NCBI RefSeq assembly: GCF_004010195.1
Contig: NC_057756.1
Span: forward strand, 8,848,921 to 8,881,366
Direction of reading: 5' to 3'
DNA length: 32,446 nt
DNA from: Chiloscyllium plagiosum
Lineage: Eukaryota
Position numbers and translations under genes: made by a program. Under the pieces are notes generated by a model. The model did no database searches and was not told the origin of the DNA. It saw only the letters and a list, made by a program, of their open reading frames with translations. Positions 22,934 to 31,970 of this stretch are shown in pieces; position 1 is the stretch's first letter; every line of letters begins with the position of its first letter.

Positions 22934-22976
22934 ATGAGCGGCACCTGGCTCCTCCTCCTCCTCCTCCAGGCGATGG
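22934..22976 (+). CDS. Gene 2 exon 1: leader MSGTWLLLLLLQAM (in-frame upstream ATG at 22904 also possible)
   Basis: Kozak CACCATGA, (CTC)6 poly-Leu, donor ATGG|GTGAGT (phase 1). Confidence 0.82.
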
Positions 22977-25900
22977 GTGAGTGACTCCCTCATGTGTCCA
23001 GTTGCTTCCTGGTCAAAATCCTGGCTGCGGATCTCCAGATCCCTGTTTGAAATCTGCCTGGCCATGCGCGCCCTTGCTGGGGCACATTTAACATGGAGGT
23101 AGTGGCTACTGTGGGGTTTAATAACTCTGAGACATGAGGGGACTCGCTTTGGCAGGAGGAAGAGAGGAGCAGAAGATTATTGAATCGGAGAAAGACCGTG
23201 GAAAGCCACAGGCTCAGGGGGGTTTAGGGGAGACCACATCTGTGAGTCACAGAAAATGCTAGGATCTAGTTCAGTGGGTCACAGGAAGGCAAACGGTCTT
23301 TGTTTCAAAGGGAATAGAGTAAAAACGTTGGGAGGCTTTTGCTAAAACAGTTCAAGGCACGAGTCAGACCAGAGCTGGGATACGGTGAGGAATCTTATGG
23401 CCTTGTATCCAAGAAAAGATAGACTGGGCATTGGAGGCAGTATAGAGTAGGTTCACTCAGCTAATTGCAGGTACAGAGACACTGTCTGATGAGGGAGAGT
23501 TTGAGTCAGTCAGGCCTGTTCTCATTGGAGATTGGAAGAATGAGAGGTGACCTGATTGAAGACTTTCAGATGAGTTGATTTGAGAGTAAGTGAGGAAGAG
23601 AGCTTGTTTCCCCTCGCATTGTGGGAGAGTCTGGGACCAAAGGGACATTGTTTGAGAATAAGGGGGAAGACAGAGATGGGGAGGGATGACTCCTCTCCGA
23701 GGGGGAGGGGAATCTGTGGAATTCTTTTCCATAGAAGGCTGTCAAGGTTGGGTCAGTGAGTATATTTGAGATAATCAAGAAGAGAAATCAGGCCGGGAGG
23801 TGGGGGGAGTGCAAGATGATCAGATCAGCTGTGATCCAATTGAAAACTGGAGCAGATGTGATGGACTGAATGGTCAGGTAGGCAAATTGAGTGGGTGTAC
23901 GGTAGGACAGACTGAGAGACAGCAGTCACTAAAGCACACAGCACCCTTGGATTTATTCATAGAGTCATAGAGATGTACAGCACATTTCATCCTTCGGTCC
24001 AACCTCGTCCATAGCGACCAGATACCCTAACCTAATCTAGTCCCATTTGTCAGCACTTGGTCCATTGGTTTTACCCTACTGCTAATTCTCTTGCAAGGAT
24101 GCCTGCCTTGAAGAAGTTTTCCTCCTCTCTCTACAAGAATCTCAGGGAGTCCCTCTCCCACTGCAACTCTATGTTACTTTTTCCCCACCCCCCCCCTCCT
24201 CTAGCTTATCTCTCCACACTTCAGGCTCTCTGCCTTTATTCCTGATGAAGGGCTTTTGCCCGAAACGTCGATTTTGCTGCTCGCCGGATGCTGNNNNNNN
24301 NNNNNNNNNNNNNNNNNNNNNNNNNNNNNNNNNNNNNNNNNNNNNNNNNNNNNNNNNNNNNNNNNNNNNNNNNNNNNNNNNNNNNNNNNNNNNNNNNNNN
24401 NNNNNNNNNNNNNNNNNNNNNNNNNNNNNNNNNNNNNNNNNNNNNNNNNNNNNNNNNNNNNNNNNNNNNNNNNNNNNNNNNNNNNNNNNNNNNNNNNNNN
24501 NNNNNNNNNNNNNNNNNNNNNNNNNNNNNNNNNNNNNNNNNNNNNNNNNNNNNNNNNNNNNNNNNNNNNNNNNNNNNNNNNNNNNNNNNNNNNNNNNNNN
24601 NNNNNNNNNNNNNNNNNNNNNNNNNNNNNNNNNNNNNNNNNNNNNNNNNNNNNNNNNNNNNNNNNNNNNNNNNNNNNNNNNNNNNNNNNNNNNNNNNNNN
24701 NNNNNNNNNNNNNNNNNNNNNNNNNNNNNNNNNNNNNNNNNNNNNNNNNNNNNNNNNNNNNNNNNNNNNNNNNNNNNNNNNNNNNNNNNNNNNNNNNNNN
24801 NNNNNNNNNNNNNNNNNNNNNNNNNNNNNNNNNNNNNNNNNNNNNNNNNNNNNNNNNNNNNNNNNNNNNNNNNNNNNNNNNNNNNNNNNNNNNNNNNNNN
24901 NNNNNNNNNNNNNNNNNNNNNNNNNNNNNNNNNNNNNNNNNNNNNNNNNNNNNNNNNNNNNNNNNNNNNNNNNNNNNNNNNNNNNNNNNNNNNNNNNNNN
25001 NNNNNNNNNNNNNNNNNNNNNNNNNNNNNNNNNNNNNNNNNNNNNNNNNNNNNNNNNNNNNNNNNNNNNNNNNNNNNNNNNNNNNNNNNNNNNNNNNNNN
25101 NNNNNNNTGATTTACAATAAGGGTCCCAGGGATGAGAAACTCTGGCAATAAGGATTGATTGAAAAAAATGGGGACTGTTCGCCCTGGGAGAGGAGAAGGC
25201 TGAGAGAGGGAGATCCAGCAAGGTTTTCAAAATCACAAAGGGGAAGGGGGAGGGGGCTGGAGAGAGATGATCCAGAGAAGCTGTTTGCGCTTGGAAAAGG
25301 AACGCGAATGAGAAAGGGAACGGGAGGGGCAAAGATTTCAAGTGAGGTATAAACGGAATGAGGGAGGGGTTGGGAAAATTAAGGAAAAAATGTTCCCACC
25401 CAGCAAATTGTTAGAGTGTGGCATATACTGCCTGGAAGTGTGCTGGGGGCAGGATAAATGGAGAGGGGGCATTGGATGGGGAGTTGGATAGAAATGGGGT
25501 GTGGAGGGATTGGGGATGGAGTAAAAACAGGGGATTGGTGATGGGTGATGGATGACAAAACCAATGTTGGTGCAATTGGTTAACCAGTCTCCCCCAGTTC
25601 CATCGCACTTCCCCATCTCGTCTGAGATCTAACCTTTTCGCTGTTTTCTCTTGCAGTGTTCCAGGGTTCACAGCAGGCAATTGACTCTCAAGGTCAGTGA
25701 CATTACTACAATCAGTGAAAAAAAATTACATTAATTTTTCTGACGCAAACTTTCCACCATCGTACACGTGAAGGTTTCCAAGTGGACATCAAACCCCGTA
25801 CTGGACTTCATCTTCCAGATTTCAGAATCTGTCCCCTCTCCCTGTCCCATCATAGCCTCAATGGCCCTCAAATATCCGTGTATTCCAATTCCCATTTCCC

Positions 25901-31900: not shown

Positions 31901-31970
31901 TACCAGACCCTGGAGTATGGACGGTTGCTCTCATCAGCCCCCAGTCTCCCAGTGGAAATTGCCCTCACTC
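22934..31970 (+). CDS. Gene 2 (5' part, continues past the window): SRCR plus LILR/A1BG/IGSF1-type Ig-C2 receptor-like protein; join(22934-22976,25657-25692,27990-28298,[30171-30470],31677-31970,...)
   Basis: All junctions are phase 1 and the frame is open through all five exons: leader, mini-exon, SRCR, Ig, Ig. Exon 4 has non-canonical splice sites. No TM or tail lies inside the window. Confidence 0.8.
23150..23875 (+). mobile_element. Decayed CR1-clade LINE 3' fragment
   Basis: AGAATGAGAGGTGACCTGATTGAA (RMRGDLIE), GAATCTGTGGAATTCT (NLWNS), and tail GATGGACTGAATGG. Confidence 0.75.
24066..24293 (+). mobile_element. Penelope-like element terminal repeat containing a minimal hammerhead motif
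   Basis: CTGATGA(24242-24248)-A-GGGC-TTTT-GCCC-GAAA-CGTC. Downstream sequence matches 3580-3620. Runs into the gap. Confidence 0.75.
25108..25550 (+). mobile_element. Decayed CR1-clade 3' fragment
   Basis: AGGAGAAGGCTGAGAGAGGGAGAT..., GAGTGTGGCATATACTGCCTGGAAG. Confidence 0.65.
25657..25692 (+). CDS. Gene 2 exon 2: 36-nt mini-exon (V)FQGSQQAIDSQ
   Basis: Strong acceptor CTGTTTTCTCTTGCAG with branch-like CTAAC upstream. Donor CAAG|GTCAGT, phase 1-1. Completes the signal peptide. Confidence 0.78.
26270..26560. repeat. GA-rich low-complexity tract
   Basis: Degenerate (GA)n. A similar tract lies at 31130-31260. Confidence 0.9.
27150..27575 (-). mobile_element. Decayed LINE 3' fragment
   Basis: Minus-strand KFPSKPFTILTWK and SLGQNPGTPFITALWVYLQH, recognised as an elasmobranch LINE C-terminus. 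Confidence 0.6.
27990..28298 (+). CDS. Gene 2 exon 3: group B SRCR domain
   Basis: [30 protein letters not shown]...VVCHQVGCG...IWMDEVRCRGTE.QLSTC....WKKHNCNHNEDAGVTC has 8 Cys in one exon. Acceptor TTCTCGTTGTAG, donor AGAG|GTAAGA. Confidence 0.97.
28360..28795 (+). repeat. LINE-derived ~87-bp tandem repeat, about 4.6 copies
   Basis: GAGAATCTAACCAT... starts at 28388, 28476, 28563, 28661 and 28748. Part of the unit reads PFTFNGVTITETPTINILGVT, a LINE RT C-terminal motif. Confidence 0.88.
29020..29800 (+). mobile_element. tRNA-derived SINE split by a solo LTR
   Basis: Head GGTTAGCTCA...GGTTCAATC at 29020-29127, resuming at 29715 (GCCTGAGGCGAGGTGACCCTCAGGTTAAACCACC). Confidence 0.65.
29128..29714 (-). 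mobile_element. Solo LTR, 587 bp
   Basis: TGTTA...TCACA termini, flanks CACTCT/CCCTCT (5/6 match), and minus-strand AATAAA at 29267-29272, about 140 bp from the 3' end. Confidence 0.7.
29850..30105 (-). mobile_element. SINE/LINE-UTR-related repeat
   Basis: Inverted homologue of 9860-10005. Confidence 0.6.
30171..30470 (+). CDS. Gene 2 exon 4: LRC-type Ig-C2 domain with defective splice sites (possible pseudo-exon)
   Basis: (D)KSFRPSISL...VGSNMEFRC...HTGNYTC...PSKTVQLRVV. The acceptor ends GAG after a long pyrimidine tract, and the expected donor reads ATAAGT at 30471-30476. Confidence 0.75.
31262..31504 (-). mobile_element. HE1-like SINE, partial
   Basis: GGAAACAGGCCCTTCAGCCCAACAAGTCC...GCAATTTAGCATGGCCAAT...GGGAGAATGTGCAAA. 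Confidence 0.88.
31677..31970 (+). CDS. Gene 2 exon 5: intact LILR/A1BG/IGSF1-type Ig-C2 domain
   Basis: (E)PPARPEIRAAPSYPAYLVGENVTLTC...IQFLKD...DPGNYTCSYQ.....LLSSAPSLPVEIALT. Acceptor TTCTACTTTCAG, donor CTC|GTGAGT, phase 1-1. Confidence 0.93.

Follow-up and report, generated by a model that had tools for sequence, protein, structure and literature searches.

The 5′ end of a Chiloscyllium plagiosum gene for a probable membrane protein that alternates group B SRCR domains with FcR/FCRL/LRC-type Ig domains

The window, a stretch of 32,446 nucleotides of Chiloscyllium plagiosum (assembly GCF_004010195.1, contig NC_057756.1, positions 8,848,921 to 8,881,366), holds the 5′ end of one large gene, which extends past the window beyond Ig exon 2. 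Every exon is of phase 1 and all lie on one strand (Table 1); upstream within the window, only a B7/BTN-like V exon was seen. The exons are genuine: the leader, the 36-nt leader exon, the SRCR exon and Ig exon 2 are exact substrings of the RefSeq protein XP_043539181.1, which is not independent evidence because it was built on the same assembly as the window. RefSeq starts exon 1 at ATG 22904, and a second in-frame ATG at 22934 had served as the start in the original prediction, giving a coding length of 73 or 43 nt, respectively. Residues 1-24 of XP_043539181.1 are identical to the translation of 22904-22975, and residues 26-36 to that of 25659-25691. The 12 codons of the 36-nt exon recur identically in the orthologues P0001 and P0151 from two other species; in all three proteins the leader, the 36-nt exon and the SRCR follow one another without extra residues. 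The reading frame is thus consistent across the gap in intron 1, one of four N gaps in the window, and a hidden exon in this gap is ruled out, as the orthologues carry no additional residues.

Table 1. Features of the gene within the window (window coordinates)
Feature	Position	Strand	Remarks
Exon 1 coding part, first half of signal peptide	22904..22976	+	donor G/GTGAGT, phase 1
N assembly gap inside intron 1, coding sequence not expected	24294..25107	.	flanked by exon 1 and the second leader exon
Second leader exon, 36 nt, phase 1 to phase 1	25657..25692	+	acceptor ...cttgcag, donor gtcagt
Single-exon group B SRCR, 309 nt	27990..28298	+	phase 1; exact in XP_043539181.1 at 38-139
Relic Ig exon 1, 'a' (HIDE1-like) type, 300 nt	30171..30470	+	open frame, phase 1, dead donor G/ATAAGT
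Ig exon 2, 'b' type (C2, FcR/FCRL/LRC-like), 294 nt	31677..31970	+	phase 1, donor GTGAGT; exact in XP_043539181.1 at 141-237

XP_043539181.1 (P0152) comprises 1415 amino acids and bears the RefSeq name “perlecan-like”. With S for SRCR and a and b for two types of Ig domain, its order is S-b-S-a-b-S-a-b-b-b-b-b-b-TM-short tail. Pfam detects three SRCR and eight Ig domains together with HIDE1-type Ig, and nothing besides SRCR and Ig-type families above cut-off; a Filamin match stays below its own cut-off, and neither CUB nor ZP is among the matches. A single membrane helix, which is uncharged, occupies residues 1349-1372 and is followed by a short tail; both lie beyond the window, and their description comes from database proteins.

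Group B SRCR domains are defined by eight cysteines and by being encoded in one exon. The SRCR exon matches Pfam SRCR (PF00530) with 121.3 bits (E 2e-35; cut-off 26.1) over profile positions 2-100 of 100, the whole domain lying in this exon, with cysteines at positions 9, 25, 38, 43, 69, 79, 89 and 99 of the translation, a GRVEV-type motif, CDD and NEDAG. Its matches in the PDB are CD163, PIT54, CD5L, CD6 and DMBT1. In SRCR8 of DMBT1, a double cation site for ligand binding is formed by D1019, D1020, D1058, D1059, N1081 and E1086 (PMC7043408, accessible sections); mapped by identical spacing, the corresponding residues D26, D27, D65, E66, N88 and E93 are all kept in the shark exon. The GRVEV motif, noted in the original prediction, is buried and no ligand site according to the same sections (PMC7043408).

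Ig exon 2 exceeds the Pfam cut-off with both Ig_3 (39.0 bits) and Ig_2 (38.5 bits). Compared with single PDB domains, the b-type profile matches PirB D6 best (33.4 bits, the match covering the whole domain up to and including its last strand), other scores being 26.1 bits for FCRL5 D4, 14.9-21.4 for LILRB2 and 17.1 for titin; two-domain chains of FcR and LRC score alike, both at ~46-49 bits. The 'a' type matches Pfam Ig_C19orf38, with 124 bits over three stretches of XP_043539181.1 and 86 bits in P0130, a family member from Callorhinchus. Judged by these profiles, the Ig domains are members of the FcR/FCRL/LRC superfamily, in which LRC is not set apart from FcR/FCRL, because FCRL5 D4 reaches 26 bits and the FcR two-domain chains score like those of LRC. 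The LRC-type Ig domains originally proposed are thus retained as FcR/FCRL/LRC-type domains, without a separation of LRC from FcR/FCRL. In LRC genes, the signal peptide is divided between two exons, of which the second has 36 nt. No statement of this 36-nt rule was found in the literature searched, which was that outside subscription journals. The leader exons of FcR-like genes follow a 30/21-nt rule (PMC2413239, accessible part), from which the shark gene departs with its first coding part of 43 or 73 nt and its second exon of 36 nt.

Neither ITIM, ITSM or ITAM nor a charged membrane-helix residue is present in XP_043539181.1, P0001 or P0151, and the suggestion that the C. plagiosum gene belongs to a paired-receptor family is therefore not supported. 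The tails of P0001 and P0151 carry NPVY, an LDL-receptor-type endocytosis signal, and NPAY is found in three isoforms from Narcine. Beyond RARNKSKQ, the tail of XP_043539181.1 departs from those of the orthologues, and it lacks NPxY; the putative endocytic tail is therefore seen in the orthologues, not in the model of the C. plagiosum gene. The explanation favoured here, with a joint probability of roughly 0.7, is that the window contains the 5′ end of a mosaic gene including a skipped Ig relic, that the product is a type I membrane protein with group B SRCR domains alternating with Ig domains of two types, and that its role is that of an endocytic scavenger or pattern-recognition receptor rather than a paired signalling receptor. 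Such a receptor could function in the following manner: the SRCR domains may bind polyanionic microbial or host ligands via the conserved double cation site, several of them on a long Ig stalk would make binding multivalent, and the bound material would be taken up, as NPVY in the orthologue tails suggests. The unit SRCR-a-b presumably spread by duplication of phase-1 exons.

A different explanation, unlikely though with some chance of being correct, is an LRC-type regulatory receptor of a paired inhibitory/activating family, which acquired SRCR and signals like LILR, KIR and PIR. The rank of PirB D6 and the LILRB2 scores (15-21 bits) are consistent with it, as are the 36-nt leader exon in place of the 30/21-nt arrangement, the ITIM-like motifs VTYATV and IIYANL of P0130 and the automatic names IGSF1-like and A1BG-like of Ig-only relatives. 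However, the helix and tails described above offer no such signalling device, the FcR/FCRL domains and chains are on par with LRC or close to it, and the 36-nt rule was in no paper found.

For the scavenger-type mosaic, splicing provides a further line of evidence. In run X1, which is RNA-like by guess only, one contig joins 28298 to 31677 at GT..AG with a depth of 45, coinciding with both predicted exon borders; the joint is seen in this one contig of one run, and its short side is 24 letters long as against the 31-letter rule of the tool. Depth in X1 is 61-65 on the SRCR exon, 167-245 on Ig exon 2 and 0-4 on introns, and the joint is absent from the DNA-like run X7. On the exons, no reads were obtained from X12 and X13, two single-cell RNA runs of which 2 and 6 of every 100 reads were sampled. 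Paralogous b-type exons could have been the source of the X1 contig. A b-type Ig directly following the SRCR is also found in P0001 and P0151, making this order common to three hemiscylliid species. Furthermore, 1469 amino acids of interleaved SRCR and Ig (P0034) are encoded on a Logan contig of 4733 nt, which is intron-free given these lengths. The SRCR exon is thus spliced straight to Ig exon 2 on one transcript, and the joint, the exact match to XP_043539181.1, the order in the orthologues and the 4733-nt contig bear out the original prediction that SRCR and Ig exons share a transcript.

Ig exon 1 is the relic of module 1's 'a' domain; its donor is mutated, and it is left out of the mRNA. 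It scores 56 bits on the 'a' profile versus 26 on the 'b' profile, and only 17 bits on Ig_3 (cut-off 30); owing to the dead donor and this sub-cut-off score, the window has one usable Ig exon and one relic. A single phase-1 chain of leader, SRCR and at least two Ig domains had been expected, of which the leader, the SRCR and Ig exon 2 hold up and Ig exon 1 drops out. The exon is missing from XP_043539181.1, P0001 and P0151, its depth in X1 is 3.2-3.5, at the level of introns and far from the 61-245 of the used exons, and the joint 28298 to 30171, which had been named for checking beside that to 31677, is not among the 15 of 73 joints listed for this run. A DNA contig of X7 spans 30057-30663 with mismatches only at 30105 and 30124. 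Alternative donors were considered and rejected: the GT dinucleotides at 30464-65, 30467-68 and 30475-76 each break the frame, and a U12-type AT-AC intron is ruled out by the following acceptor, which ends in AG. Some use of the exon is possible: the acceptor is of normal appearance, and the open frame, kept in just 389 of 20,000 shuffles, continues for 23 codons past the exon up to a stop at 30539-30541, so that inclusion would yield a short secreted product of leader, SRCR and Ig alongside the long membrane form. In view of the depth, the joints and the three proteins without the exon, such a secreted product is quite improbable.

It is very unlikely that the SRCR and Ig exons are separate adjoining genes fused by an annotation or assembly artefact. 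Gene predictors often merge multi-copy immune families, four N gaps interrupt the window and the splice evidence is one contig, but the GT..AG joint falls exactly on both predicted borders, the order is identical in three hemiscylliid species, SRCR and Ig are interleaved on the intron-free contig, and the exons, all of phase 1 and on one strand, have no leader exon or stop between them except after the dead relic exon. Even less credible is a basement-membrane or adhesion proteoglycan, for which only the automatic and misleading name “perlecan-like” and the long Ig run speak: modules of the LDL-receptor class A, laminin and EGF types characterise perlecan, no such module is among the Pfam matches of SRCR and Ig-type families, and the shark protein has one membrane helix with a short tail.

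Interleaved SRCR/Ig proteins form a family of which the mosaic gene is a member. Its predicted proteins occur throughout the cartilaginous fishes (sharks, rays and a chimaera) and only sporadically among bony vertebrates (a few teleosts and a caecilian). Among the best 150 relatives of the Ig exon, 21 carry SRCR, including those at ranks 1, 2, 3 and 5; automatic names range over DMBT1-like, WC1.1-like, SSC5D, perlecan-like and “uncharacterized”. A search with P0130 from Callorhinchus is dominated by multi-SRCR proteins, SRCR and an Ig Pfam family occurring together in 6 of the 120 listed. The Ig-only protein P0186 retrieved 12 proteins (10 from Callorhinchus, one from lungfish and one from metaclust) and none from mammals. 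A paper on SRCR-Ig receptors of cartilaginous fishes was not found in the searched literature, again outside subscription journals, and the genome papers on the bamboo shark and the elephant shark do not use the terms scavenger, SRCR, LILR or Fc receptor in their main text, although their supplements may list such genes. The gene itself is already predicted in public annotation, as had been suspected for SRCR-Ig models in general (XP_043539181.1 and relatives). Since the gene models are public, the novelty consists in recognising and interpreting the family rather than in the sequence itself.

Many genes of sharks, rays and chimaeras thus encode Ig domains of the FcR/FCRL/LRC superfamily, often joined to scavenger domains. 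Among SRCR proteins, CD5L associates with IgM. According to the accessible parts of a 2014 study (PMC4016189) and a 2026 review (PMC13337447), cartilaginous fishes are without Fc receptor-like molecules; the former also states that they are without LRC homologues having only C2 domains, and the latter asks how sharks manage antibody-dependent uptake. A bolder reading, which we regard as unlikely when all its parts are taken jointly, is that, within the FcR/FCRL-LRC superfamily, the interleaved proteins form the branch of the cartilaginous fishes, that Ig-only receptors arose by SRCR loss and that the family even includes a shark receptor for antibody-coated particles. If so, the superfamily would be older than the split from bony fishes, contrary to the statements of PMC4016189 and PMC13337447, and Ig-only LRC/FcR receptors could derive from a scavenger-type mosaic by losing SRCR exons, in parallel with the Ig exon loss seen here. 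An FcR-like Ig combined with SRCR and an uptake signal could then be the missing receptor. For comparative immunology, a description of the family would supply a new set of receptors for tests of microbe or antibody binding, concrete data on when LRC/FcR-type receptors arose and a tidy case of how phase-1 exon shuffling adds and removes modules.

One of the closest known proteins is FCRLS, which in the mouse and further mammals combines FcR-superfamily Ig with type B SRCR and is described in three papers (PMC7940838, PMC4016189, PMC2413239) as a soluble mosaic protein that originated in a eutherian ancestor; the original statement that mammalian group B SRCRs have no Ig domains is therefore incorrect (PMC7940838). 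The shark gene likewise joins FcR-superfamily Ig to type B SRCR, but its protein has three SRCR domains, starts with one at the N-terminus, alternates them with Ig and has a membrane helix in contrast to soluble FCRLS, and its leader exon has 36 nt instead of the 21 nt of FcR-like genes. As the family is present in cartilaginous fishes, its fusion of SRCR and Ig most likely arose independently of FCRLS. With the LRC receptors (LILR, PIR, KIR, IGSF1, A1BG), the gene shares C2 Ig domains from single phase-1 exons, PirB D6 as best single-domain match, LILRB2 matches over the full domain length and a second leader exon of 36 nt, whereas LRC ectodomains consist of Ig only and LRC receptors signal by ITIMs or a charged membrane helix, neither of which is seen here. 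The multi-SRCR group B proteins (CD163, DMBT1/SALSA, SSC5D, WC1, CD5L) have short linkers or CUB/ZP modules between their SRCR domains and are not known to have Ig domains there. They resemble the shark protein in the single-exon SRCR with eight cysteines, the conserved cation site and the multiple SRCR units per chain, which would allow multivalent binding; in the latter, Ig domains separate the SRCRs and Pfam finds no CUB/ZP. HIDE1 (C19orf38), finally, is small and has just one Ig domain, which the 'a' type matches through Pfam Ig_C19orf38; in the shark protein, this HIDE1-type Ig is one module of a long mosaic.

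The SRCR and Ig exons of the window belong to a real gene, correctly spotted in the original prediction, which is a member of a wide family of mosaic receptors. When the window is read and translated, five exons are found on the + strand, each in phase 1 (see table). The translation of the SRCR exon contains eight cysteines as well as the SRCR motifs that had been predicted from the sequence, namely an 11-residue motif, CDD and NEDAG. Searching the window by tblastn with the exon translations as queries revealed no further SRCR exon or Ig exon of the same kind. The window contains four N gaps; at the position of the gap in intron 1, the orthologues P0001 and P0151 (protein models from other species) have zero additional residues.

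Features of the window, with read depth in run X1 and corresponding residues of XP_043539181.1
Feature	Position (nt)	Strand	Description	X1 depth	Residues
Exon 1 (leader)	ends at 22976	+	donor G/GTGAGT; ATG 22934, additional in-frame ATG 22904		1-24
Second leader exon	25657-25692	+	36 nt		26-36
SRCR exon	27990-28298	+	309 nt; Pfam SRCR 121 bits	61-65	38-139
Ig exon 1 (relic)	30171-30470	+	300 nt	3.2-3.5	
Ig exon 2	31677-31970	+	294 nt; Pfam Ig_3 39 bits, Ig_2 38.5 bits	167-245	141-237
Unique intron bins				0-4	
N gap	24294-25107		in intron 1, which separates the two leader exons		
Minisatellite-like repeats	5800-7650		G-rich and C-rich, around N gap 6187-7164		
V-set Ig exon	8708-9052	+	345 nt; acceptor ...ttccag, donor gtgagag; Pfam V-set 24.8 bits, slightly below cut-off 26		
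TG/CA dinucleotide array	22157-22349		long, imperfect, 96 copies, about 600 nt upstream of start codon		
Tandem repeat	28381-28797		intron after SRCR exon; unit about 87 nt, 4.5 copies, 80% matches		
Interspersed repeat	31188-31598		just upstream of Ig exon 2; very high copy, X7 depth up to about 2 million		

The translation of Ig exon 2 alone, searched against 1.84 billion representatives, yielded 594 matches at E ≤ 0.001. The cluster of the best match includes XP_043539181.1, a C. plagiosum protein of 1415 aa annotated as ‘basement membrane-specific heparan sulfate proteoglycan core protein-like’, a name that is misleading. The exon translations from the window are exact substrings of this protein, and the joined form considered here is the database's own rather than a fresh exon assembly. 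The suspicion that SRCR-Ig models may already exist in fish annotations was thus well founded, as this model and its relatives are present in the databases. The domain order is the same in the orthologues P0001 (C. punctatum, 1707 aa) and P0151 (Hemiscyllium ocellatum, 2103 aa): the leader, a 12-codon second leader and the SRCR domain are followed directly by a C2 FcR/FCRL/LRC-like Ig domain (‘b’ type).

Among four runs compared over 27900-32000, one also supports a single transcript for SRCR and Ig. Run X1, which carries the same species label and whose RNA status is guessed rather than recorded, behaves RNA-like, with exon depth far above intron depth. A single X1 contig links 28296 to 31675, which after a shift of the cut by +2 corresponds to a joint of 28298 to 31677 with GT..AG ends, at a depth of 45; the NCBI model has the same splice. 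This joint, which the original prediction had proposed looking for, was not found in the DNA-like run X7, where depth is even. It rests on one contig of one run, with a short side of 24 letters versus the 31-letter rule of the tool, and b-type exons resembling Ig exon 2 occur elsewhere in the gene. Two single-cell RNA runs gave zero reads on the exons, but since only 2 and 6 in 100 reads were sampled, they test nothing in this respect.

The prediction of at least two Ig domains holds insofar as two Ig exons are found; the first, however, is a relic, a dead exon of an otherwise real gene, and is skipped in the RefSeq protein. Its would-be donor reads G/ATAAGT, and no frame-keeping GT is found nearby. 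These letters are not an assembly slip, because a DNA contig from another run agrees with the window over 30057-30663 at every position but 30105 and 30124. On Pfam Ig_3 the exon scores 17 bits versus a cut-off of 30, and its frame is open, as it also is in 389 of 20000 shuffled versions. Even so, the exon truly belongs to the family: a small profile built from the family's HIDE1-like Ig domains (‘a’ type) gives it 56 bits, compared with 26 from the b-type profile. Module 1 of the S-a-b series (S, SRCR) is without ‘a’, and the relic lies exactly at the expected position.

Across its whole length, XP_043539181.1 matches Pfam SRCR three times and Ig_3 eight times, together with three HIDE1-type Ig domain matches totalling 124 bits; local profiles give the order S-b-S-a-b-S-a-b-b-b-b-b-b. 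The orders of the orthologues, S-b-(S-a-b)x3-b-b-b-b-b and S-S-b-(S-a-b)x4-b-b-b-b-b, identify S-a-b as the repeating unit. A single uncharged membrane helix (1349-1372) is followed by a tail of 45 residues. The tail ends in NPVY in both orthologues, and NPAY is present in three Narcine isoforms; the tail of XP_043539181.1 (residues about 1373-1415, outside the window) departs from the conserved orthologue tail right after RARNKSKQ and has no NPxY, which, judged from the sequences, suggests that the last exon of the model was missed or is alternative. In a further X1 contig (339 nt, depth 61), the last letters of the SRCR exon run on into its first ones (27988-28296, going back 309). A paralogue or haplotype with a tandem copy of the SRCR exon could produce such a contig, as could a circular RNA made of this one exon or an assembly-graph loop; the tandem copy is conceivable because SRCR1 occurs in P0151 as two near-identical domains in succession.

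SRCR domains occur in 21 of the 150 best relatives of Ig exon 2, including ranks 1, 2, 3 and 5, and in 50 of the 183 proteins gathered. Members are found in sharks (Chiloscyllium, Hemiscyllium, Scyliorhinus, Mustelus, Cetorhinus with one cluster of 25 models, Heptranchias and Heterodontus), rays (Narcine, Pristis), a chimaera (Callorhinchus), teleosts (Salminus, Epinephelus) and a caecilian (Geotrypetes), under names such as ‘uncharacterized’, DMBT1-like, WC1.1-like, SSC5D, IGSF1-like and M130-like. In Callorhinchus, 8 of 12 matches to an Ig-only relative combine SRCR and Ig, and one relative, P0130, has two ITIM-like motifs. Interleaved SRCR/Ig mRNAs exist, since the 4733-nt Logan contig that encodes the 1469 aa of another relative (P0034, nearest to a Pristis gene) is too short to hold introns as well. 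In the Callorhinchus milii protein P0304 (479 aa, ‘TRIM17-like’), precomputed Pfam matches place SRCR, Ig and PRY/SPRY together; either the gene model is a merger, or the protein would combine an SRCR-Ig receptor with a B30.2 tail of butyrophilin type.

Against PDB sequences, Ig exon 2 matches, in this order, FCRL5, FCRL4, KIR3DL1, neurotrimin, FcεRIα and GPVI, all weakly; look-alike clusters in the ESM Atlas are named FCRL2 fragment, IGSF1-like and FCGR3 fragment. A b-type profile of 17 domains (alignment A1) gives single-domain PDB scores of 33.4 bits for PirB D6 (profile positions 2-96), 26.1 for FCRL5 D4, 23.8 for PirB D1, 14.9-21.4 for LILRB2 domains and 17.1 for the best Titin domain, while the totals on two-domain chains are alike for FcR and LRC, at about 46-49 bits. 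From these matches and scores, which are not a phylogeny, we conclude that the domain lies in the FcR/FCRL/LRC superfamily, leaning slightly to LRC. A 36-nt second leader exon marks LRC genes, although no statement to this effect was found in the literature searched. In FcR-like genes the leader exons obey a 30/21-nt rule (PMC2413239, accessible part), from which the shark gene departs with its second leader exon of 36 nt. The gene may have a bearing on LRC origins.

Elsewhere in the window, the lone V-set exon looks, by eye, like a B7/butyrophilin V domain, and no C-type exon to pair with it was found within the window. The repeats at 5800-7650 produce long artificial proline- or glycine-rich open frames on both strands. 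Read depths in the thousands, seen in both runs, assign the tandem repeat after the SRCR exon to a dispersed family, and the interspersed repeat upstream of Ig exon 2 is the sole part of the examined stretch with reads in number from X12, a single-cell run.

The accessible part of PMC7043408 describes a double cation site in DMBT1 SRCR8, formed by D1019, D1020 and E1086 plus D1058, D1059 and N1081, where mutation of D1019 or D1020 abolishes ligand binding; the GRVEVxxxxxW motif is buried there and is no ligand site. The shark SRCR exon has D26, D27, D65, E66, N88 and E93 in identical spacing, and each SRCR domain may hence bind polyanionic ligands in a Ca2+-dependent manner. Multiple SRCR domains per chain would make binding multivalent, with the membrane-proximal Ig run serving as a stalk. 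If the NPxY of the orthologues applies to the C. plagiosum gene, the receptor may take up the bound material.

No published description of the SRCR/Ig family was found in the literature searched, supplements and subscription journals being outside its scope. Cartilaginous fishes have been stated to lack Fc receptor-like molecules (accessible parts of PMC4016189 and PMC13337447), which the Ig-only and SRCR-Ig models argue against at the level of domain similarity. The original prediction was wrong in holding that mammalian group B SRCRs are without Ig domains: FCRLS combines Ig and SRCR in mammals (PMC7940838, PMC4016189, PMC2413239) and is described as a soluble mosaic protein whose origin is put in a eutherian ancestor. 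Given this solubility and origin, the shark family, in which the domains are arranged differently, is a separate arrangement and most likely arose by a fusion independent of FCRLS.
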